Shown here piece after piece: positions 6,062-18,925 of a DNA stretch of 64,000 nucleotides (its first letter is position 1; each line of letters starts with the position of its first letter). The notes under the pieces are model-generated. The model searched no databases. It worked only from the letters and a program-made list of their open reading frames with translations, and had not been told where the DNA came from. Source of the DNA: Paramoeba atlantica (lineage: Eukaryota > Protista > Discosea); the NCBI GenBank assembly GCA_977017575.1, contig CDRNVI010000012.1:868001-932000 (forward strand), read 5' to 3'. The position numbers were made by a program, and so were the translations under genes.

Positions 6062-6300
6062 CATTTTTCGATATAAAATTTTGACATTGCACATTATTTA
6101 AATTTGTACATGTCGAATCATTGCTTAAGCAATGTCTAAAAGTCAGAATGGATTGCATCTTTTGATTATATTTCGCAAATACCATAGTCAGGATTTTTTT
6201 GTAACGTAAACAGTATTTCGTTTGAACACATTTGTTTGAACTCTCAGATTATTTGCTTGCGATTTTAAAACGTAACGTGTAGCTTCATCTAGCACTCACA

Positions 6301-6828
6301 ATGAAAAAACTTATGTTCTGCATCATTTTTTTAGTCCGGCCGCTATTGGAATGTAGGGAACCAGTCAAGGAAACAAATTCCAAAATGTGGACTCCAGAGT
6401 ATTGTAAAAAACTTGGGTACCATTCAGCTCTCTTGAATTGTGCGACTTGTAACGTAGTGTTTGGCTCAGCAGAATTCAAAACAATATATGATGAGTGCAT
6501 GGAATGTTGCTACGATGATCGGGCGCCACTCCAAGCGTTACCCAACGTGTACACTAGGGTAAAATTTTATCTCCCTCAAAGAACATATGAATTCGTTCCC
6601 ACATACAGATCTCTCATCGACGAAAGGCTCCGTCCGAAATACAAAAATCAGATTGACATAATTTTTGAAGAGACCCCTCCGCGATTTTTACTATACAAAG
6701 AAAATGACTCTGTTGGAGACGCGTTTGATGCGTCGGAATGGTCTGTAGATACAATTTTTGATTTCTTAGCTGATCAGTTGGAGGTCTCGACCATGTTAAA
6801 CGGTGAAAATTCCAATGATGAATTGTAG
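6301..6828 (+). CDS. SELENOF/Sep15-like ER protein lacking the CxU motif
   Basis: N-terminal hydrophobic leader; CKKLGY..ALLNCATC and ECMECC Cys-rich UGGT-binding region; C-terminal EWSVDTIFDFLADQL; ends NDEL. Confidence 0.8.
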   Translation: MKKLMFCIIFLVRPLLECREPVKETNSKMWTPEYCKKLGYHSALLNCATCNVVFGSAEFKTIYDECMECCYDDRAPLQALPNVYTRVKFYLPQRTYEFVPTYRSLIDERLRPKYKNQIDIIFEETPPRFLLYKENDSVGDAFDASEWSVDTIFDFLADQLEVSTMLNGENSNDEL

Positions 6829-6960
6829 ATCAGGAAAATTCTCCCATTAGAATCTTTAAATATTGGTCCATGCTCTGGGGCTCCTTTTAGCGCATGAACT
6901 ACGAAACGTAGGATTCAAAAAGCGAAATCCGTCATCATTTCTCCTGGCCAATTCACTGGC

Positions 6961-7016
6961 CGCGCGAATCTGTTGCCAAATGTTGCAATGTTCGCGCGAA
7001 TCTGTTGCAATGTTCG
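6961..7016. repeat. Short nested direct repeats
   Basis: cgcgcgaatctgttgc x2 and tgttgcaatgttcg x2. Confidence 0.8.
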
Positions 7017-7354
7017 GTTGATACTAACGACTACCAACCACGACAAGTTATTGGGGTAACGGGGCCGACTCATGTGCAACTTGGGTCGACTCTGTTGAGA
7101 GCGCATTGAAATCATTCAAATGATTATATGTATTTGAGTGGTGAAAAAAGAAGTAAGTTAGCTTAAATCATTATATTTTTGTAATTGTTTACGCTTTTCC
7201 AGAACAAAATTACGTAGCACATTATCAGCGCGTCCAATGCATTATCGTTGTTCTAGAGTTTCTCAACCCTGCTCCAAGAAGGCCTCGTTGATACTCGTCG
7301 GGTAGAGATGCCTCTCTACCTGAAAAGTGTCCCTCTGTTACTCTCTCAAGTTTC

Positions 7355-7378
7355 AAGACTTAGAGTCTAAGTCTTAGA
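7355..7378. repeat. Overlapping palindromes
   Basis: aagacttaga-g-tctaagtctt (10-bp arms) overlapping tctaag-t-cttaga. Confidence 0.75.
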
Positions 7379-7591
7379 CAAGTACACAGAGTACAAAAAT
7401 TGATCACTTCAAATTTGCATAATTGAACACCTCATAGTTTTACCTCATAGTTTTATTCTCGATTCTGTGATCGTTTTTTTCTTCTTACGTTTCAGTTTTC
7501 TACCCCTTTTCACAACTGGGAGTTTTCTTTTGCTTTACACACAACTTTTGCTACTGTGCAATTATCACTTTACAATAACAAAGGTATTGCA

Positions 7592-8248
7592 ATGTTTGCG
7601 AAAATCTTGCGATTGTCTTTTGCGACGTCAACTAGTCCAGTTTATACATCAGACACTCAGGCCCCTACCCGCTTAGCGAAGGTAAGAGGCACATTTTTAC
7701 CACAAGAATACCATTTAGTGCGGCTTATAGAAGGCATCGAGAACCAACATTCCTCATGGAATACTGGCACACCTGCATGCAAATGGCATGGAATACAATG
7801 CAATGAAGAAGGCGCAGTAATTTCTATTTCCTGGCTCTATGGCAACCTTTGCGGAGAGCTAAGTTGGAAGTATTTACCACCCACGTTATTCACTTTATCA
7901 CTTTATGACAATAAACTGTGCGGAAATGTGCCCTTCTCCTCGTTGCCGAAAAAGTTGGATCTAATTAATCTTAGCCAAAATCGCTTTTCTGGTGAGCCAA
8001 ATCTTCGGGATTTGCCCCCTTTACTAACTTATTTGGACATTGGATATAATCACTTCGAAGGGCACGTTGATCTTGATTCACTCCCTGTATCACTCACTGA
8101 TTTATATCTTGCATCAAACCAAGGGTTGGAAGGCATCTTAGATCTGGAAGGGAGAGTTAGCCATTTTTGTTACAGTGTTCTAGAAACTCACATCACAACT
8201 AGCAACGGAAAGTTGTGTGTCTACTCTGATGATGAGGCATCAGAGTAG
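7592..8248 (+). CDS. Leucine-rich repeat protein, paralogue 1 (plant-type LRRNT cap)
   Basis: LPQEY.L.RL..IEN.H.SWNT.TPAC.W.GIQC cap followed by L.L..N.LxG repeats; likely start at internal ATG 7592 (MFAKILR). Confidence 0.88.
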   Translation: MFAKILRLSFATSTSPVYTSDTQAPTRLAKVRGTFLPQEYHLVRLIEGIENQHSSWNTGTPACKWHGIQCNEEGAVISISWLYGNLCGELSWKYLPPTLFTLSLYDNKLCGNVPFSSLPKKLDLINLSQNRFSGEPNLRDLPPLLTYLDIGYNHFEGHVDLDSLPVSLTDLYLASNQGLEGILDLEGRVSHFCYSVLETHITTSNGKLCVYSDDEASE

Positions 8249-8574
8249 GTATTTTTTACATTTGCGTGCATTTTTAGGTCCGTATACAGTATCTCAAGAA
8301 ACTGATAACACTTTCTCGCGTTGAACATTGTTTTAAGAATTTTTTTTATATAACAGAAGCCTCTACTTAATATTATGGTGTGGTAATATAGTCCGCTAGA
8401 CCATGTGGGTAGCCATTAGCTTTCCAGTCTGATTGCTTACTCTCTGAACAAATGGGAATGCTATTTGTGCTCTGTTTCTATGTGATCTGTTTTTTGTCCC
8501 TCTGTGATCAGTTTTGTCAATTTTGGTATATATTACGAAATAAAAATACTTACTTCATTCGATACATGCTTACA

Positions 8575-8850
8575 TCAATACTTTATGTAACCGTCCTTCG
8601 CCTTGATTACCGTTTGTATACGTCGCGACATGCTTTCCAGAAGACATAACAGTATGAAGAGGATGTGATCTCCCACATTTTCTTAGAACTCTACACAACC
8701 TCTCCCATATTCGCCGGTGGAGGCTCAACTTCACCTAGCTTTGCCGTTAGTTGACTCCAAAGATTCTCAATGGGATTTATATCCGGTGACTGCGGCGGCC
8801 ATTCAACCAGAACTTGAACTCCCACGCTGGCAATCTTGCTGGGGTATTTC
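8575..8850 (-). mobile_element. Tc1/mariner transposase C-terminal remnant
   Basis: Minus strand reads GVQVLVEWPPQSPDINPIENLWSQL, then after an in-frame stop and frameshift LLESMSRRIQTVIKAKDGYIKY*; classic Tc1 SPDLNPIE motif and SM.RR..AVI.AKG..TKY end. Confidence 0.9.
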
Positions 8851-9031
8851 ATATTAAATAAAAGAATCTTGACATTTCGCGAAGAATATGTAGTACTGTA
8901 GAATATTGCGGTGGTTGTAAAACTACCGCTCTACCTTCGATTATTGGGCTTGGGGGTACGTTCGTTGAGTACTCAACGAACGTACCCTGTGACAGTAAAA
9001 AATCTGCAGGACCTTAGAGGGAGGAGGAAGA

Positions 9032-9290
9032 AAGGCCCAACTGTGAGCGAAGCCCACGCCTGCAGGCAAGGCCCCCGTTTGCGAGCAAGGCCCAACTGTG
9101 AGCGAAGTCCACTACTGGTGGCAAAGGCCCCCGTTTGCGAGCAAGGCCCAACTGTGAGCGTAGCCCTGGGACATAATTATATTTTTTGACGACTCGCGCG
9201 CTCCAGCGCGCGGGTCGCGCACTGAGAACCTATGTCTACCACTTCCGCAGGATTGTCCAGAGGAAAGGACCAACTGTGAGCGTAGCCCAC
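9032..9290. repeat. 55-56 bp tandem repeat (about 2.5 units) plus one dispersed copy
   Basis: aaggcccaactgtgagcg(a/t)ag(c/t)cc at 9032, 9087, 9143 and 9265 (variant); aaggcccccgtttgcgagc at 9068 and 9124. Confidence 0.9.
9191..9216. repeat. GC-rich hairpin
   Basis: gactcgcgcgc-tcca-gcgcgcgggtc, 11-bp stem with one G:T pair. Confidence 0.8.
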
Positions 9291-9672
9291 GTCTGCGAGC
9301 GCAGGGAAGTGGCAGAGTAGGCCGCGGCGATGACTTTCCACCTGGGGGTACCCCCCTGGTAAGCGCTGGAGGGGTCCGACAAGGTCAAAAATTCCGAAAT
9401 TTTTGGGATAACCAAAAAAAAAAAAAATTTTGACGCAAACAAAAGTAAAAATATTATTTTTTCAAAATCGACTCCTAAACCGTATTTGGAGAGTTTGGGA
9501 CCTCACCTACCATTGTACGACGTTTTTTCGTCAGATTCGACTCCTGCCCCTACTGGTAAAGCATCAAAAACAGCCCAAAATTGGTGAAATTTCGCAATTT
9601 TTGCCGAAAATTCAAGCCTTATAACCCAAAAAGGTAGATTATTCATGATCTTTCGGAAATTTTCCTTTTTTT

Positions 9673-9767
9673 GGCTCTTCGTTAAACGCGGTGGTAGTTT
9701 TCAACGTGAAACGCGCAGCATGAGTGACTTCTAAGTTGAAAACAACCACCGCGTTTAACGAAGAGCC
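9673..9767. mobile_element. 95-bp element with 33-bp terminal inverted repeats (MITE-like / cruciform)
   Basis: ggctcttcgttaaacgcggtggtagttttcaac (9673-9705) versus gttgaaaacaaccaccgcgtttaacgaagagcc (9735-9767), 1 mismatch, 29-bp spacer. Confidence 0.65.
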
Positions 9768-10371
9768 TAAAAAAGTGCTATAAATGTGTTTACTAGATAT
9801 AAATTTATACAAATTTATACTGTATTTGACATAGTTCTTCAGTAAATGACAAAGAATCATCCGAGAATTACTTTCCTTAAACTTCCATTACTATTGACTG
9901 ATTGCAGTGGGTTGCATAACTACCACTCTACCCTCAATTATTGAAAAATTATTTAAAAAAAGTGGACAAAAATAGTGAAAAATAGAGAAACACGGTAAAA
10001 AAGAAAAAAAGGTAATAGAGAACAAAGTAATGAAGAAATGAAATGCGAAAGGGGTGCCGGTGGTTCAAAAATAAAGTGTGTAATCATTACTAATGGTGTC
10101 CTCAAAAAGCTGTTTTTTAATCGCAAAAACAAATTCGGCCCCGCTTTGCGGCGCCTGTTTTCTTCGACTCACAAATATGTAGGGAAAGTGATTTTACTAT
10201 CTTTTCCCACAATTGACAAATAAGTAGGGGGTGTGCAGCGACAATTATGTAGGAGGGGATAACGAGTGGAAAAGTCTTAAAAAGTCACCAAAAAAGGTTT
10301 TTTCGACAAAAAAATAATACTTGAAACCTGCATTTATAGTGCCGGTTACCCAAAGCTTCTTTATCCTTCAT

Positions 10372-13300
10372 ATGACAAAACTAGGCAATGTTCCATCCGT
10401 ATTCATCCCTGCAATAGGTACAGCACGGTCACAAGAAAGATGTGCGTGGAATGTTTTGAGCGAATCTGGCATGGAAGCAACGATTGTTATTCATCGGCGT
10501 GACGAGGAACTTTTTCGTAGGCTTGTCAAAAAAATGAGAGGCATTCGCCTTCGGGTTGCCCCCCGACGTTGCCACTCTTTTTCTCAACTTTGCAATTACA
10601 TCATCACCGAACTAGGAAAATCTCGGAACTGGGTATGGATTATTGATCAGCACGTGGAAGATTTTTGTTTCCCGGCGACACCTTCCCATGAGTACCGTTC
10701 TCTTTCGCCGCTAATTGCCCTGCAGCACCGCACTGAATGGGAAGATTGTCAATCACTTTCCACAGAAACCCCGGAAAGATCAATATCAATTATAGCACTA
10801 GAACGATGTTCTGTGTCAACAGGAGAGGTGGTACCTTTTTGCGAAGATTGTCAACCTTCTGCTATATGCATTAAGACCTCCATGGGAACATGTTTCCGTA
10901 GCAATCTTCGTGCAACGGATGATGTGCTCCTAGGTGCAATGCGTAAGGGTCACAATGTATGCTTTATTGGAACCGTTGGTTGCGCGTTCAAAACGGGTGT
11001 AAACCGCTACACGGAGCACATCCTAAACTACTCCATGTTGCCGGCGCAGGTAGAAAAAGAAAGATCGCAGTTTGAAAAACGATGGAGTTTCTTGACTATA
11101 AAAGCGCGGTCGCCCCGGTACTCTGTTTCATGGGAAAACGTCGAAAAACATTTTGGCGAGCATAATGAAGATGACTCAGCTGTTACTGAAAATTCTTTGG
11201 AGTCGAGGCGTAACACAGGTTCGTCACCACGTACAAGCCGCTTTGCAGCTGTAGAAAATGTTTCCTCGAAGGCTGGATCGCTTGATGAGGCGGGGCAGCA
11301 GATAAGGGGCACCAGCACCGATACCCTTCCAAATAAATATTTTTTGAGATCCAAAGGAACAAATTCTCGCGAACCCTTCCTGTGGGATGTGGGTAAATCG
11401 TTTTTTAAAAGAAAGAGACAAACCCAGAAAAAATGTCCCTTAGATACTTGGGATGTAGGTGGTAAATTTCTTTATGAGAAGTCACTTCCTTCAACAAAAG
11501 TGTGTCTTAAGCCTATTTCAATTTCAAGAGGTATTGAGACGCCTGAAATGATGTCTAGTCAGCCTGAGTCGAAATCTGCCCAGGGGAGAAGCGGTGCAAC
11601 AAAATGTCAAACGTCTTGTGCAAAATCGAAGGACAGTGTGTCTGAGGATCCGACAAATCTAACTTCTGAAAATCCATCCAGAGATCTACTTGAAGATATG
11701 CCTACGCGAATCTCAACTAGTATGCCACAAAAAGATATTGAAAAAGAGCTTCCTATGAAAATTGGGATCGAAGACGAGATTATCAATCCCTTTGATTTTA
11801 ACAATACTAATCATGATCTAAGTTTTCTATTAGAGCAACTAAGAACGCATTCTACGGAATACAATGAGAGCTGTAGCCCCGACATCGACAAGGTGCAAAG
11901 TCATTGGGTTGGCATCATAGAAGTCGAATACGCCTCCCTAATATGTTTTTGGGGAGGTACCATTTACGTTGTTGACATGGCGTCACCCACAAACGTAGAT
12001 CAGCTAATCGAAATATTTTCTTTGTCAGTTGATAAAATAGTTGTAGGAGCTCAACCGATTTACCGCAGTCTACTTCGACACTTGCGCGGTACGCCGCTTT
12101 ACGACACGTTTTACCCTTCTATGATTCAAGACCTTTCAATTTCATCGTTTCTTCTTGGGCACCGCACGCTAACTGTAGATTCACTCCCCGAACACGCACG
12201 TAATCTAGGATGTGATGTAGTTGAAGTTCGGTTTCCTCAAATTTTATGTGACATCTCATTCCAACACAAAAAATTGTTACAATATGAGAATTTGTTCTCT
12301 GTGTGTAGTACCGCGAACGAACTCGAGTTTGTTCTAGCCCGAATGCACTGCGATGGACTATTGTTAGACTTACAAGAAATGATTCGAGTCAAATCCGAAT
12401 GGCTCTCCCAGCTTGAATCCCCTTCCATTACAAAGGCCAACGAACGAAGTCTCATATCTCGTATCGGTAACTTAGAGAGCGTTTTACACGAGACCGTTTC
12501 AAAATCACTCACGGAATCCGATTGTGCGCTACGAGAAATTCACCCTTTTTATCGTCAGACCACGCGAACGGGTCGCATCATGTGTTCACGGCCCAATATT
12601 CAAACCTTTCCAAAAGAAACCCTAGTGAACGGGGCGAGCAGTTCGGGATTACGAACAGCTCTACGTCCACCGCTTGGCATGGTATGGGTCTCTCTGGATT
12701 ACAGCCATTTAGAACTCCGTCTCCTGGCACACTTTGCAAACGACGACGTTCTCAAGGAAATGTTTACCCACGATGTCGATGTTCACGCACACTTCGCCTC
12801 CTTGTTGGAACAGAAACCAACGGAGGCGATTACCCATGACGAGAGAGAGCGGGCCAAACTTCTGATTTATAGTTATCTTCATGGAGCAAAAGTTGAACGG
12901 CTTGCTGCATCCACGGGTCTCGGCTGGGAGCGTGTCTCGGCATTTCTTTCTCGGTGTCAGGAGACTCACCCAAGGCTTACGGCTTTTCGGGCATCCGTGA
13001 AACAAGAATGTGAGGTAAATGGTGTAGTTCGTACGCTATGTGGCACAAGGGGTAACTTTCCTCCTACTACGTCAGGGAGTGAGCCCGACCCGTGGCTCTA
13101 TACCCAGGCGGTGAGTTTTATGATCCAAGGATCTGCTGCGGATATTATGAAAAAGCTGCTTTGTACTCTTTTTCGCATGACCCAAGCCCACACGCCGTGT
13201 CCATTTTATGTAGCATTCCAATTGTTTGACGAAGTAGTCTTAGGGGTGGATAAGAGATTCTTGTCCTACGTGCTGCCTCGTATTTTAAAAGAAGCGGAAA

Positions 13301-13449
13301 GTGTAGTGGCTCTTTCCGTGCCTCTTCGTTGTACCGTTCGAGTGGGTAAGAATTTCGGGGCAATGCAACGTTTGGGTCGAACTCGACTACTCAACGTCGA
13401 TAACACCAACGCTGGAAGCAATCTTTTTACAAGAAATACATGGAGATAG
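10372..13449 (+). CDS. Family-A DNA polymerase (Pol theta/nu/PolIE-like) with N-terminal TAGT/JGT-like glycosyltransferase-fold domain
   Basis: TRTGRI...PNIQ, motif A SLDYSHLELRLLAH, motif B RERAK..IY..LHG, IQGSAADIMK, motif C QLFDEVVL; first ATG at 10372 (track starts at TTG 10321). Confidence 0.88.
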   Translation: MTKLGNVPSVFIPAIGTARSQERCAWNVLSESGMEATIVIHRRDEELFRRLVKKMRGIRLRVAPRRCHSFSQLCNYIITELGKSRNWVWIIDQHVEDFCFPATPSHEYRSLSPLIALQHRTEWEDCQSLSTETPERSISIIALERCSVSTGEVVPFCEDCQPSAICIKTSMGTCFRSNLRATDDVLLGAMRKGHNVCFIGTVGCAFKTGVNRYTEHILNYSMLPAQVEKERSQFEKRWSFLTIKARSPRYSVSWENVEKHFGEHNEDDSAVTENSLESRRNTGSSPRTSRFAAVENVSSKAGSLDEAGQQIRGTSTDTLPNKYFLRSKGTNSREPFLWDVGKSFFKRKRQTQKKCPLDTWDVGGKFLYEKSLPSTKVCLKPISISRGIETPEMMSSQPESKSAQGRSGATKCQTSCAKSKDSVSEDPTNLTSENPSRDLLEDMPTRISTSMPQKDIEKELPMKIGIEDEIINPFDFNNTNHDLSFLLEQLRTHSTEYNESCSPDIDKVQSHWVGIIEVEYASLICFWGGTIYVVDMASPTNVDQLIEIFSLSVDKIVVGAQPIYRSLLRHLRGTPLYDTFYPSMIQDLSISSFLLGHRTLTVDSLPEHARNLGCDVVEVRFPQILCDISFQHKKLLQYENLFSVCSTANELEFVLARMHCDGLLLDLQEMIRVKSEWLSQLESPSITKANERSLISRIGNLESVLHETVSKSLTESDCALREIHPFYRQTTRTGRIMCSRPNIQTFPKETLVNGASSSGLRTALRPPLGMVWVSLDYSHLELRLLAHFANDDVLKEMFTHDVDVHAHFASLLEQKPTEAITHDERERAKLLIYSYLHGAKVERLAASTGLGWERVSAFLSRCQETHPRLTAFRASVKQECEVNGVVRTLCGTRGNFPPTTSGSEPDPWLYTQAVSFMIQGSAADIMKKLLCTLFRMTQAHTPCPFYVAFQLFDEVVLGVDKRFLSYVLPRILKEAESVVALSVPLRCTVRVGKNFGAMQRLGRTRLLNVDNTNAGSNLFTRNTWR

Positions 13450-13723
13450 TTGGTGCACCTAATAGTTTCTTACGAGTTATCAGCTATTGATAGAGCGTTT
13501 TTAGCAATACATAAAAAAATTACGTAAAGGCACAACAAAAAACACGATTCAAAAAAATGTACATGAACGAAGACCAAGCTTTTGATACCCATTATTTAAT
13601 AAGAATTATTGCTCATTTATTTACTAAGCTCATGACATTCCGAAACTAAAGGCTGATTAGTCTACCGTTGTAGTGCCGATCCAGTGGGCCACGTTTTAGT
13701 CGCGTTTTTGGTCGCGATTGAAA

Positions 13724-15637
13724 ATGTGTGAGCTTTCCTCCGTTATTACAAAATGGTGCGACCAGCAGGAATTACTTATTGACTCGGAGAAAAATGCCTC
13801 CGAATTAAAAGGGGCACGTTCACGTGCAATACGCGGTCATATCGAGCAAGTTATTGCCGTACTCGACGAAGTATATCATTTTCATATTCAACTTGCTAAG
13901 AAGCTAGAAAAAAATCCTTACCGTCCGCGTGAGTCAGTTAGATTGCAGCGACATGATCCAACAGACAAGAAGCCTATCTCGTCAACTTCATGCACTAGAC
14001 AAGACAAAAGAAAATTAAATGGAGTCGTCATACAAGTGGGAGCAGGAAATATCGTGCTTGCCGTGCAGGATTTCGATTTTACATCTGAATGGGGTATGGA
14101 TGTGGAAGTAACTCTAACGTCATGTCCTGATGAACTTACCTTTCGACGACTTCGACGTGTATTGGGATCCGAAGAGCCCAGCATACGCGTCTTGCAACGA
14201 ATGTTTCCTACGCATGCTGATATTGTTTTTGGGAAGTCTGATAAAATTCCAGAGCCTGACGCAGATAAACAAAATAGTATAGAGCTTTTCAACTCCTCAT
14301 TGAATGAAGCACAGCAGCGTGCTGTACTAGGCGCTCTACATTCACCAAACATTCACATTATCCACGGTCCTCCAGGAACAGGGAAGACCACTACAATTTG
14401 TGAAATTGTTCGCCAGATGACCATTCGTCAAAATTTTCGTATTCTGGTTTGCGCACCATCAAATGTAGCCGTGGATAACATTCTGCTTAGCTTGAGCAAC
14501 ACAAGGCTTTCCAGCAAAGGCATCCGTCCGATTCGATTAGGTCACGTCGGTCGAGTACATCCCAATATGGCGCAGTATACCTTAAATGAGTTACTCCGCT
14601 CGCACGAGCAAAACGAGGTTCTTTGCGATATACAACAAGATATTAACAAACTTCTCAAAGAGCGATGCACCGGTAGGTCTAAATACAGTGAAATCAAGAA
14701 ATTACGTAATGAACTGCGAATGAGAGAACGAAAAGCGACAGAGCAACTGTTCATGTCGGCAAACATGATTACATGCACGTGTAGCTCTGCGGCCCACTAT
14801 CTTGTACAACAAGACTGTTTTGATGCTGTTCTAATTGATGAGGCATCACAGTCGCTTTTTGTTGAAAGTTTCATCCCTTTGCTTCGAGCGTCCCGATGGA
14901 TTCTTGTTGGGGATCCGTGTCAGTTACCTCCTACGGTGCTAAGCGGCTCTAAAGAGCTCGAAAAAACACTTATGGGTCATTTATTGTCTAAGGAAAAAGA
15001 AACTTCGAATATTTTATCCTTACTTGATACGCAATATCGTATGCATGAAGAGATTTGTGGGTGGAGTAATCGGGAGTTCTATGAAGAAAAACTAAAAACG
15101 GATGTATCCTCAGCGAGCGCTCTTCTGTGTGATTTGCCAAGTGTTGAATCCACCTACGAGACCTGCAGCGCTATTATGTTTGCAGACACCAGGGAAATGG
15201 GTCTTGGAGAGAGTTCTTCGTCCTCAGGAAGCAAAGAAAGTTTTGGGGAATCTATGCTGGTGGAACAGCACGTGCGAAGTTTGAAGTCTGCTGGAATTGC
15301 TCTCAGTTCGATCGGAGTTATCACACCGTACTCCGCTCAGGCAAAGCTGATTTCTGAAAGCTTACGTGCTGAGATCGATCCTGACTCCAACGTTGAAGTT
15401 AGTACAGTGGATGCATTCCAGGGAAGAGAAAAACTAGCAGTCATTCTATCTTTAGTGCGTTCCAACGTGGAAGGAGAGGTTGGATTTCTATCAGATTCTC
15501 GTCGGATGAATGTAGCCTTGACCAGGGCACAGAGACATCTCTTGATAATAGGAGACTCTGACACCATGAACCGGGATTCCGGGCTGCGAAAACTTTGTTC
15601 TTATTTAGAAGAAATAGCTTCGTATGTCCAGATTTAG
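13724..15637 (+). CDS. IGHMBP2: SF1 helicase, IGHMBP2/SMUBP-2/Hcs1-like
   Basis: GPPGTGKT, CAPSNVAVDN, IDEASQ, GDPCQLPP, QYRMH, ITPYSAQ, STVDAFQGREK, RRMNVALTRA. Confidence 0.88.
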   Translation: MCELSSVITKWCDQQELLIDSEKNASELKGARSRAIRGHIEQVIAVLDEVYHFHIQLAKKLEKNPYRPRESVRLQRHDPTDKKPISSTSCTRQDKRKLNGVVIQVGAGNIVLAVQDFDFTSEWGMDVEVTLTSCPDELTFRRLRRVLGSEEPSIRVLQRMFPTHADIVFGKSDKIPEPDADKQNSIELFNSSLNEAQQRAVLGALHSPNIHIIHGPPGTGKTTTICEIVRQMTIRQNFRILVCAPSNVAVDNILLSLSNTRLSSKGIRPIRLGHVGRVHPNMAQYTLNELLRSHEQNEVLCDIQQDINKLLKERCTGRSKYSEIKKLRNELRMRERKATEQLFMSANMITCTCSSAAHYLVQQDCFDAVLIDEASQSLFVESFIPLLRASRWILVGDPCQLPPTVLSGSKELEKTLMGHLLSKEKETSNILSLLDTQYRMHEEICGWSNREFYEEKLKTDVSSASALLCDLPSVESTYETCSAIMFADTREMGLGESSSSSGSKESFGESMLVEQHVRSLKSAGIALSSIGVITPYSAQAKLISESLRAEIDPDSNVEVSTVDAFQGREKLAVILSLVRSNVEGEVGFLSDSRRMNVALTRAQRHLLIIGDSDTMNRDSGLRKLCSYLEEIASYVQI

Positions 15638-16525: not shown

Positions 16526-18925
16526 TTGGAGCAAGAACCAACTAGAATAGCATTTACAGGCTTTGAAAAAGAAGTAATTAAGAAGTTTGAAGTCTCCACA
16601 AATTCTTGTGAATGGCTCACGGTACAGAAAGATATTTCACAACGAACCTCGGTTCTAATCTGTGCTTGCGTAGCAACTCATAAATATGTTTACGCAGTGA
16701 AACATAAGATACCATGCGTTCAGAGGACTTGGCTAACCGAGTCCGTTCGAACGGGATACCCCTTGCATTGTATCGAAAAGTTCATGGTTCCTCCACTACA
16801 TGGTCTGCGAATATCCGTAACAGGAGGATCTCAAAGACAGAGGGAAGAAGTAGCGACGAAATGCGTGCAGGCAGGTGGGCAATTTTCAGCCAACTTGGAT
16901 AAATATGTCCATTGTCTTATCATACTTCAAAAGAGCGAAGCGGGACGTATTCAACAAGGGCCAAAAATAGATTTTGCAAAAAAGTATAAAATTCGTACGG
17001 CGAATTTAGAGTGGCTGATACAAATTATTGCGCAGGGTTACTGGAACGACACCGTGTGCGATCAAGATTCCGCGCATGCTTCTCACTCTGTTCGTATGCT
17101 TTCGAATTCCCCTGAAAACTCCACTTTAAAAGTACAATCGCCCACCACGAAGGAATGTTACTTGAACGACTTCTTTGTATGGTTTCTAGGCGAACTTCCT
17201 TTACATTTTTCTGGCACAAAGGAAGCGACTGGATTTGTGCACGATAAGGTTCTATCTTCACATACAAATATCATATGCCTATCTGGGGTGAAACTGAACG
17301 ATCTGGATGTGTGTAATGCATTTCAACGTGTAGACCCAGAGTTTCGTCGCTTCGCTATACAACTGTGGTTAGAGGGAAAAGCGACCCTTCTACACTGGTC
17401 GTACTTTTTGCTATGTGCTTCATTAAAATCGAAGCAAGATTTAGCCATCTATACAATCCCTCCATGCCTGCACTATTTTGAAAGAGTCATAGGATTGCAT
17501 TCTTCAATTTCTATTAAAGAAAAACAGGAATTGGCCATTATCGTTGAGCGATTGAACGGTTGTGTGCTGTTTATGGATTTCATGGAACCTGGTCCAGACG
17601 ATGGTGTCAATGAAAACATAGAAAATATATGCAGAATATCATCTCATCTTATTGTGCGTCAGGAGGACGACTTGACCTCGGGTAGGCGTATTAAAAGCCT
17701 ACCAAAAAATCATCCCACGCCCATTTTTGCTTATGCCAGCTGGCTTCGAGATTGTGAAATCCAAAACAAATGGATGGAACCGCGCAAGGAACATTTATAC
17801 CCAACGGAGAATTTTCAGAGGCCACTGCGACCGATGCTAGAATCAGCAGCTTATATGCGACAGCCCTCAGTTACATCTACAAACAACTCCTTTACACCCA
17901 CGTCCCAAGACCCTTACAAGCACGATCTCAAAAGAGAACGATCTGACACCTCCTCAACTCAAAACTTCCACAACGAAACAACTCAACCGGATCGATCCGA
18001 CGAAATCCTTGCCTTGTTTTCGCAACGTTGCAAAGCCCAACCTCCACAACCTCAACCCTCTCCCCCCCCTCCCACCTCCACAAACCCTCCCCTGCGCTAC
18101 TCTTGCCTCCATCGTACCTTTGTACCCCGCCACCTCGACCCCACCCCCACCTCCCCCCTCTACGAAAGCCAACGCGTCATCTACAACCACAACCCCTCCC
18201 CCTCTCCCCCTCCCCCCTCCCCTCCCCCCCCCTACCGCTTCCTGCTCGGCCACAAGGACCCGCGGCAGCGCTCGGCCCTCATCGCCCACATCCGCGCGCT
18301 CCCGGGGGCCACCGTCGTGGGGTCCGTGTCGTCCTGCACGCACTACCTCCCCCCCCGCGCCTCCAGGTCCGAGACCTTCCTCTCCTGCATCGCCTCCGGG
18401 AGGTTCATCCTGCGCCCCGCCTTCCTCACGGAGAGCGTGCGGCACGGGGCGTGGCAGGACCCGGGGGGGTATGAGTGGGGGGTGGGGGTGGAGGGGGAGG
18501 GGGAGGAGGGGGGGGTGGGGAGTATGACCACACAGTCACTGCTGCTTCAGGCGTGTCGAACGTGGCGACTCCGGGGTGGGGGGGCGTTTGGGGGGTGGAG
18601 AGTGGTGTTGGTGATGAGGGAGGTGGGGAGGAGGAAGAGTTTTGGGAATGTGTTGCGACGGGGGGGTGCGTCGTGGGTGGGGGAGGTGAGTCCAGAGGAG
18701 GTGGAGAGGGGGGAGAGGTTGTGCGAGTTTGAGAATCCGAACTATGTTATCTATGATGATGGTTTGGATGAGGAGGAACAGCGAGCGATGTATGGTAAAC
18801 TCCGGGGTAGGACGAAGAATTCGTCGCATGTGCGCTTGGAGTGTATTATTTTCGTATTGACCTATCCGGATGAAGTGATTCCAGGGGCCTTGCGCGTGAA
18901 CGGTCGTAGTCATAAATTCAGGTGA
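16526..18925 (+). CDS. TOPBP1: TOPBP1/Rad4/Cut5-like multi-BRCT protein (start codon unresolved)
   Basis: N-terminal BRCT pair (VPPLHGLRISVTG); C-terminal BRCT7/8 pattern CTHY...RSETFLSCIASGRFILRPAFL.ES...GYEWG and GAFGGWRVVL...R.KSF..VLRRGGA. Confidence 0.85.
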   Translation: MEQEPTRIAFTGFEKEVIKKFEVSTNSCEWLTVQKDISQRTSVLICACVATHKYVYAVKHKIPCVQRTWLTESVRTGYPLHCIEKFMVPPLHGLRISVTGGSQRQREEVATKCVQAGGQFSANLDKYVHCLIILQKSEAGRIQQGPKIDFAKKYKIRTANLEWLIQIIAQGYWNDTVCDQDSAHASHSVRMLSNSPENSTLKVQSPTTKECYLNDFFVWFLGELPLHFSGTKEATGFVHDKVLSSHTNIICLSGVKLNDLDVCNAFQRVDPEFRRFAIQLWLEGKATLLHWSYFLLCASLKSKQDLAIYTIPPCLHYFERVIGLHSSISIKEKQELAIIVERLNGCVLFMDFMEPGPDDGVNENIENICRISSHLIVRQEDDLTSGRRIKSLPKNHPTPIFAYASWLRDCEIQNKWMEPRKEHLYPTENFQRPLRPMLESAAYMRQPSVTSTNNSFTPTSQDPYKHDLKRERSDTSSTQNFHNETTQPDRSDEILALFSQRCKAQPPQPQPSPPPPTSTNPPLRYSCLHRTFVPRHLDPTPTSPLYESQRVIYNHNPSPSPPPPSPPPPYRFLLGHKDPRQRSALIAHIRALPGATVVGSVSSCTHYLPPRASRSETFLSCIASGRFILRPAFLTESVRHGAWQDPGGYEWGVGVEGEGEEGGVGSMTTQSLLLQACRTWRLRGGGAFGGWRVVLVMREVGRRKSFGNVLRRGGASWVGEVSPEEVERGERLCEFENPNYVIYDDGLDEEEQRAMYGKLRGRTKNSSHVRLECIIFVLTYPDEVIPGALRVNGRSHKFR
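17850..18800. other. C-rich to G-rich skew-switch island (switch ~18445)
   Basis: C-runs 18050-18430, G-runs 18460-18730, inside TOPBP1. Confidence 0.9.

Follow-up and report, generated by a model that had tools for sequence, protein, structure and literature searches.

What is a domain resembling a DNA-modifying glucosyltransferase doing at the front of a DNA polymerase? The question is raised by a single open reading frame (ORF) in a 64,000-nucleotide stretch of DNA (hereafter the window; positions 868,001 to 932,000 of contig CDRNVI010000012.1, Paramoeba atlantica assembly GCA_977017575.1). The frame opens at the first ATG after an upstream stop, at 10372, and runs for 1025 codons without an internal stop. 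Its predicted product consists, in order, of a GT-A domain derived from the base-J glucosyltransferase (JGT; amino acids (aa) 5–262), a linker of ~240 aa, the remnant of an exonuclease, and a very divergent family-A polymerase; this is a new combination of two known families, so far found just in this genome. The gene is a real, expressed gene of kinetoplastid-type euglenozoan character, with the following parts:

10372–13449, + strand: coding sequence, one ORF of 1025 aa (first ATG at 10372, TAG stop at 13447–13449).
10384–10674, + strand: TAGT/JGT-like domain, donor (nucleotide-sugar) half, aa 5–101 (phmmer, custom hidden Markov model (HMM), hhalign).
10675–11157, + strand: putative acceptor half of the same domain with the JGT-type C-terminal extension, aa 102–262, strongly eroded (residue order in full hhalign runs).
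11158–11871, + strand: polar, probably disordered linker, aa 263–500 (71% polar residues, no Pfam match).
11911–12321, + strand: degenerate 3'–5' exonuclease-like region, aa ~514–650 (hhalign against the Klenow-type parts of bacterial Pol I).
12460–13359, + strand: family-A polymerase fingers and palm, aa 697–996 (Pfam DNA_pol_A).

The TAGT family was reportedly defined by Iyer and colleagues in 2013, and several independent comparisons place the N-terminus within it. A phmmer search with aa 1–275 against 1.84 billion representative proteins returned a single match, P0121 (E = 8.7e-5, over aa 4–113), which itself bears a clear TAGT domain (Pfam PF20691, E = 2e-17) and whose relatives are trypanosomatid TAGT proteins (a Trypanosoma brucei chromosome-10 protein and proteins of T. 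cruzi, T. rangeli, T. vivax, and Strigomonas). This family is the JGT family, and P0121 is a JGT orthologue. Profile comparison by hhalign matched aa 1–275 to 24 JGT-family proteins with a probability of 95.7% (E = 9.9e-9, 195 columns) and to the trimmed JGT domains at E = 7.9e-10 (211 columns). A second, independent TAGT profile, built from 33 phage-type TAGT ORFs out of metagenomes, matched aa 5–211 in the same register as the JGT profile (hhalign, E = 1.2e-6); among the controls (30 shuffles and the reversed sequence), the best E-value was 0.0027 and the top probability 11%. The custom JGT HMM scored 32.6 bits over aa 6–101, and the ESM-Atlas feature neighbours of the N-terminus were TAGT clusters, at 0.96. 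Pfam PF20691 was not reported for the N-terminus by hmmscan even at E ≤ 10, its gathering score not being reached, and neither PHROGs, a word-index search with aa 1–300, nor tblastn against phage genomes returned a match. These profile similarities indicate that aa 5–262 are homologous to the TAGT/JGT family, as a preliminary description of the locus had proposed; the phmmer match and the hhalign results against two independent profiles agree on the point. A chance resemblance of motifs was considered as well, and is ruled out by the E-values and the shuffle controls.

The statistical signal sits in the donor half, for which hhalign with aa 1–115 alone reached E = 6e-11. All that identifies the putative acceptor half is a series of anchor residues standing in the same order as in the family (R180, D184, L187, G193, G209, F234, W238, R249, and W254), the last four of which fall past the end of the Pfam domain, in an extension that the JGT alignment shares. 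A MAFFT alignment of the fusion N-terminus with 20 JGT-family domains (21 rows) contains 15 columns invariant in every row, and places the following segments, on the + strand, against family blocks:

aa 11–18: FIPAIGTA, aligned with PIFIPSKGR.
aa 39–48: VIHRRDEELF, aligned with VVVEPxExxxY.
aa 73–77: LCNYI, aligned with VRNxI.
aa 87–98: WVWIIDQHVEDF, aligned with WFWVMDDDIxxF.
aa 180–193: RATDDVLLGAMRKG, aligned with REDYDFTLQxIxxG.
aa 234–238 and 249–254: FEKRW and RYSVSW, aligned with FxxxW and RxDIxVxW.

Every TAGT motif listed in the preliminary description is thus present, each on the matching conserved JGT block. Given the JGT alignment, AlphaFold2 (AF2) produced a GT-A model (predicted local distance difference test (pLDDT) 74, predicted template-modelling score (pTM) 0.78; pLDDT 86–95 over aa 21–90) that resembles GT2-type enzymes (VIA Z = 12.2, Foldseek E = 4e-5), the fold being largely inherited from the alignment rows. 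A TAGT Atlas cluster also superposes on the model (TM 0.73), which again leans on the JGT alignment rows. The profile searches, with significant matches, uphold the proposed family membership of the N-terminus; the GT-A model is alignment-driven, and the single-sequence model failed.

Whether the two halves are made together was addressed with contigs of four public runs, aligned to 9900–13900. Run X2 lacks coverage of intergenic DNA and behaves as RNA; its contigs over the gene (10357–11541, a two-allele bubble at 11512–11704, and 11675–13448) chain by 30-nucleotide (nt) overlaps. The X2 contig is joined at 10357 to 24 foreign, unaligned letters ending ...CAGTTTCTGTACCTTGTTG(ATT), and the identical leader is joined at 13603 (13602–13604), just after AG, for the next gene; the leader string is absent from the window. 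These junctions define one further feature:

10354–10357, + strand: spliced-leader addition site, 15–18 nt 5' of the start codon (X2 contig).

In the trans-spliced mRNA the first AUG lies at 10372, so that the TAGT-like domain is translated. Among the X2 loose ends listed, none inside the ORF is leader-like (seven further ends lie outside that list), and the linker contains no stop in 238 codons (714 nt), compared with 4–27 in the other five frames. The proposed fusion of TAGT-like domain and polymerase in one ORF (10372–13449) is confirmed, and the two apparently share one mRNA; the alternative named in the preliminary description, two separately trans-spliced mRNAs, was not seen among the ends listed, the leader being joined just before this ORF and before the gene that follows. 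Two separate genes are rejected on the spliced-leader positions and the open linker. The euglenozoan spliced-leader consensus ends ...ACAGTTTCTGTACT(A/T)TATTG (PMC3795323). The leader observed here, which is of kinetoplastid type, ends ...ATACAGTTTCTGTACCTTGTTG; compared with each of the 14 consensus leaders of that study (PMC3795323), it has C in place of T at one position and G in place of A at another; a literature search found no description of this variant.

It is very improbable, given this transcript, that the fusion is an artefact, whether because assembly or a chance reading has joined a polymerase to a neighbouring, decayed JGT paralogue, or because the similarity to TAGT is itself accidental. 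The same structure is present in contigs of three runs, with leader junctions just ahead of the ORF and of the following gene, and with a stop-free linker between the domains, and the library-wide E-value and the two independent profiles agree in the same register; these observations outweigh what could be said for an artefact, namely that the type of run X2 is not on record, that contigs are no proof of a single molecule, and that Pfam reports no TAGT match.

What kind of polymerase has received this domain? The ORF continues from the TAGT-like domain into the low-complexity linker foreseen in the preliminary description, which borders an exonuclease-like region and then the polymerase, both of which were likewise predicted there and are recovered. 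Within the linker, KRKRQTQKK (11407–11433) lies between two copies of WDVG-x-x-F (11383–11475) and resembles a nuclear localisation signal. FF-type PCNA/Rev1-interaction motifs adjoin a signal of this kind in translesion polymerases; the first WDVG-x-x-F copy ends in SFF followed by basic residues, an arrangement reminiscent of such motifs. The positions of the exonuclease and polymerase motifs are as follows:

12046–12069, + strand: Exo II, NxxYD replaced by QPIYR (hhalign).
12232–12252, + strand: Exo III, YxxxD replaced by FPQIL (hhalign).
12694–12720, + strand: polymerase motif A, D776 (alignment to Bst Pol I).
12844–12885, + strand: polymerase motif B, R825, K829, Y833, and H837 (alignment to Bst Pol I).
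13219–13239, + strand: polymerase motif C, F952-D953-E954 (alignment to Bst Pol I).

The polymerase is recognized by Pfam DNA_pol_A (PF00476) at E = 4.3e-51 (174.5 bits, against a gathering cut-off of 34.3). A search of the PDB returned bacterial Pol I large fragments as the best matches (Bst Pol I, E = 1e-29), followed by human Pol nu and Pol theta (E = 1e-24 to 1e-25), and hhalign against the Klenow-type parts of 14 bacterial Pol I proteins aligned aa 555–1000 at E = 7.9e-36. Relative to Bst Pol I, the catalytic carboxylates (D776, D953/E954) and O-helix residues R825 and K829 are retained, in keeping with the intact catalytic Asp motifs first described; changed positions include Klenow F762 (Tyr), Y766 (H837), and the His of the HDE motif (H881; here F952). 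The exonuclease-like region aligns with bacterial Pol I from aa 555 onward, and has lost its acidic catalytic residues; no alignment was obtained for Exo I (hhalign against bacterial Pol I), and Pfam DNA_pol_A_exo1 has no match in the fusion protein. We regard the 3'–5' exonuclease as a dead remnant, judging by these replaced motifs. By ESM features, the polymerase lies nearest to short family-A polymerases of bacteria and to chordate Pol nu. The sole kinetoplastid polymerase returned by the word search, at 30% identity, is the Leishmania mitochondrial POLIA (LmjF.34.1260), with which the fusion gene shares no synteny, its neighbours being different; in a tree of polymerase domains, the end branch of the fusion is ~10 changes per site long and cannot be placed. 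The PolIE/PolN-type and translesion labels given in the preliminary description consequently stand as possibilities and not as assignments.

The state of the glycosyltransferase active site bears most directly on what the N-terminal domain does. R...DDD...EDY/F are the GT-A active-site motifs of JGT and its phage relatives (bioRxiv 10.1101/2023.12.21.572611). The corresponding residues of the fusion protein are T, DQH, and ATD, through the changes SKGR to AIGT, DDD to DQH, and REDYD to RATDD; two of the altered sites are located here:

10645–10653, + strand: D92-Q93-H94, replacing the family-invariant DDD (MAFFT alignment).
10909–10923, + strand: R-A-T-D-D, replacing the family R-E-D-Y-D, with E and D lost (hhalign, MAFFT).

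The GR-to-GT and DD-to-DQ changes reported in the preliminary description are therefore real. Conservation reaches 90% or more at 66 columns of the 20 JGT domains; of these, the fusion protein retains 24, more often non-polar (18/39) than polar ones (6/27; Fisher P = 0.07). What has been kept is the hydrophobic and aromatic scaffold of the fold, above all in the Rossmann-like nucleotide-sugar half; most of the invariant polar residues are gone, among them the SKGR arginine, all but one of the DDD aspartates, and the Glu-Asp pair of REDYD. A tree built with the JGT domains gives the fusion an end branch of ~10 changes per site, where the median is 0.26, and its placement on so long a branch is uninformative. 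The loss of motifs and the long branch fit a paralogue freed from catalytic constraint, and the glycosyltransferase-like domain is most likely a pseudo-enzyme. The C-terminal module of JGT is absent as well: hhalign of aa 256–560 against the JGT C-terminal alignment gave a probability of 0.1%. The linker was also considered as a hidden version of this module and rejected, showing no similarity (hhalign). In JGT itself the module spans ~120 columns (P0121–P0147) with the pattern W.GY...R...A..GL..I...G..VA..P...RG.P...CY..P, and the searches listed no Pfam family for it.

A domain that is still an active glycosyltransferase would need rewired chemistry, with a DxH metal site and a relocated base, and the protein would then be bifunctional, re-glucosylating hydroxymethyluracil (hmU) or another acceptor on freshly made DNA. 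Polypeptide GalNAc-transferases have as their metal motif a D-x-H that follows a hydrophobic strand, and D92-Q-H94 stands after such a strand; D184 is invariant and D183 acidic, the donor-binding half is the best conserved, and the N-terminal domain carries signs of purifying selection. This alternative is nonetheless unlikely, in view of the extremely long branch, the eroded acceptor half, and the loss of the residues at positions S14, R17, R74, D93, E181, and D182, each at least 90% conserved in JGTs and within active-site motifs. Of the earlier statement that the domain is degenerate and dead, the degeneracy of the catalytic motifs is upheld and the word "dead" is not, D-Q-H having the form of the GalNAc-transferase metal motif.

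Does the domain matter at all? Comparison of alleles provides some evidence of constraint. Run X1 contributes a DNA-like allele, ~2% different, with no indel in the ORF; the ORF is indel-free in the X1 and X2 allelic contigs, and no frame-breaking change occurs in the other alleles. Allelic differences are distributed as follows:

aa 1–275: 7 synonymous, 6 non-synonymous.
Linker: 2 synonymous, 2 non-synonymous.
Polymerase half: 2 synonymous, 8 non-synonymous.

For aa 1–275 this departs from a neutral expectation of 76% non-synonymous sites (binomial P = 0.02), and the N-terminal domain shows signs of still being constrained by purifying selection, within small allele counts. The count for the polymerase half says little, because synonymous divergence there is seven-fold lower. 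Synonymous haplotype divergence falls ~seven-fold towards the 3' side, from 7/~198 sites (10372–11196) to 2/~426 (11675–13449), which suggests a recombination or gene-conversion boundary within the fusion gene.

These patterns make it distinctly unlikely that the N-terminal domain is a harmless, functionless relic of an old fusion, with the polymerase alone of consequence. Such a relic would account for the missing catalytic motifs, for a second half that is barely recognisable, and for the failure of our searches to find an orthologue anywhere else. Neutral DNA would, however, have lost both frame and scaffold after ~10 changes per site, whereas here at least three haplotypes have kept 825 nt plus the 714-nt linker open, the aromatic and hydrophobic core persists, and synonymous changes are in excess.

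The explanation that we favour, with modest confidence, is that a JGT-derived pseudo-glycosyltransferase, as its residues suggest, has been retained to target or regulate an exonuclease-dead, probably nuclear polymerase. The homology, the fusion, its transcript, and the motif losses are observed; from these we infer the loss of catalysis, the nuclear location, and the targeting role. The N-terminal domain would have stopped glucosylating hmU and would instead serve the polymerase, to which it might lend the binding of uridine diphosphate (UDP) or UDP-glucose, of modified (hmU/J) DNA, or of the usual partners of JGT; a polymerase without proofreading could thereby be brought to J-rich DNA, at telomeres and where transcription units end. 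In kinetoplastids, telomeres and transcription boundaries are marked by base J and by hmU, from which it is made, and we know of no account of how DNA polymerases handle DNA containing them. One nuclear enzyme of family A, PolIE of T. brucei, acts at telomeres rich in J (PMC7515707, PMC8887473), and JGT associates with the JBP3 complex (PMC7055916). Among the candidate roles, binding of UDP/UDP-glucose or of a partner is ranked first, with direct recognition of hmU/J no higher, because the donor half is conserved and the acceptor half eroded.

Several observations weigh against this explanation. Taken alone, aa 116–275 gave E = 0.26 with hhalign, which is not significant and no better than shuffles, and the fold model is driven by the JGT alignment rows, single-sequence AF2 yielding an unusable model (pLDDT 35). 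A reader of DNA would depend on the acceptor half, which is the least conserved part, and the C-terminal module of JGT is missing. The RNA evidence consists of assembled contigs, from a run whose type is not on record. Motif loss is the whole of the case for calling the domain non-catalytic; D92-x-H94 could still hold a metal and a UDP-sugar, and D183 and D184 persist near the lost ED. The allele counts are small, with the polymerase half showing 2 synonymous to 8 non-synonymous differences.

The preliminary description had cast the domain more specifically as a reader of hmU/J, or of UDP-sugar. In its stronger form, a JGT-derived reader or sensor of hmU/base-J DNA or of UDP-glucose would deliver the proofreading-less polymerase to glucosylated DNA, which we consider doubtful. 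The hmU/J-reader function is a conjecture: the acceptor half, the would-be contact with DNA, is the most eroded part and falls short of significance by itself (E = 0.26), and the nucleotide-sugar half is the best kept. If a reader did exist, this would be a dedicated euglenozoan system for copying or repairing hypermodified DNA, and the first polymerase with a built-in module from a DNA-modification enzyme. If the domain is a pseudo-enzyme on a polymerase, as we favour, it would be a clear case of a DNA glycosyltransferase turned non-catalytic; were it inert or merely structural, the fusion would be a lineage-specific curiosity of domain shuffling. For the question of whether DNA synthesis is physically coupled to the J pathway, the fusion offers a concrete lead in the form of a gene that can be cloned and tested.

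Searches for the same architecture elsewhere returned nothing comparable. None of the polymerase matches carried PF20691 and none of the JGT relatives carried PF00476, the JGT word search being blind to proteins of more than 836 aa. No relative of the fusion was found in the 1.84-billion-protein library, which excludes the proteins of this genome itself, nor any close relative in JGI metagenome contigs; 80 metagenomic TAGT loci were scanned without finding a family-A polymerase within 6 kb, and a literature search returned no description of a TAGT–polymerase fusion. Five phage-like loci in that material (L006, L013, L038, L045, and L042) contain two tandem TAGT-family matches within ~2 kb, which suggests paired DNA glycosyltransferases.

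The genomic setting is that of a kinetoplastid-type polycistronic unit. All 27 window ORFs of at least 250 aa that could be named by Pfam are ordinary eukaryotic housekeeping genes on the + strand, and this run has the layout of such a unit. The next two genes downstream (13718–15637 and 16526–18925) likewise belong to DNA metabolism, encoding a superfamily 1 (SF1) helicase of AAA_11/AAA_12 (DNA2/Upf1-like) type and a BRCT-repeat protein (PTCB-BRCT, RTT107_BRCT_5), so that three DNA-metabolism genes stand consecutively in one polycistron; this may be coincidence. Upstream of the fusion gene, a gene-poor, lower-GC stretch (6100–10300) contains a 56-bp tandem repeat at 9032–9166 (2.4 copies, 90% matches). 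Two short intergenic stretches (9900–9948 and 10196–10228) reach a run depth of up to 1343, against ~40; they continue on both sides into unrelated sequence and look like multi-copy short repeats. A ATTATGTAGGG-like motif recurs in 10176–10260.

Comparison with known systems sets the fusion beside four groups of proteins. Kinetoplastid PolI-like enzymes comprise the mitochondrial POLIA–D and the nuclear PolIE (PMC7515707, PMC8887473). With these and with animal Pol nu and Pol theta, as exonuclease-dead family-A polymerases, the fusion shares the palm and fingers and intact motif A and C carboxylates, and it resembles them further in its degenerate exonuclease, the lack of a helicase domain, and a Tyr at Klenow F762; its identity to any of them is ~30%, it has His and Phe substitutions of its own, and none of them carries a TAGT domain. 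Phage TAGT-type DNA glycosyltransferases act on 5-hydroxymethylcytosine (5hmC) and 5-hydroxymethyluracil (5hmU) (bioRxiv 10.1101/2023.12.21.572611; phrog_842); they belong to the same family but stand alone, at ~250 aa, with an intact R...DDD...EDY. Kinetoplastid JGT (PF20691; T. brucei P0138, T. cruzi P0132) has the same block order of the GT-A domain and the same JGT-type extension (F...W, R..V.W) beyond the Pfam domain. A JGT orthologue is the nearest sequence in all libraries, yet identity to JGTs is just 16–22%; the fusion lacks the invariant S/K/R, DD, and ED as well as the C-terminal module, has a polymerase attached, and sits on a branch ~40 times longer than those of typical JGTs. In animals, GREB1 and GREB1L join a TAGT domain to an inactive, circularly permuted superfamily 2 (SF2) helicase module (PMC6163654), and GREB1 is reportedly an active enzyme that modifies a protein (PMC7968844). 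Neither the attached module nor the order of domains is that of the fusion, and the likeness is drawn from published description rather than direct sequence comparison; on these terms GREB1 is the nearest precedent, a eukaryotic TAGT domain joined to a module that handles nucleic acid.

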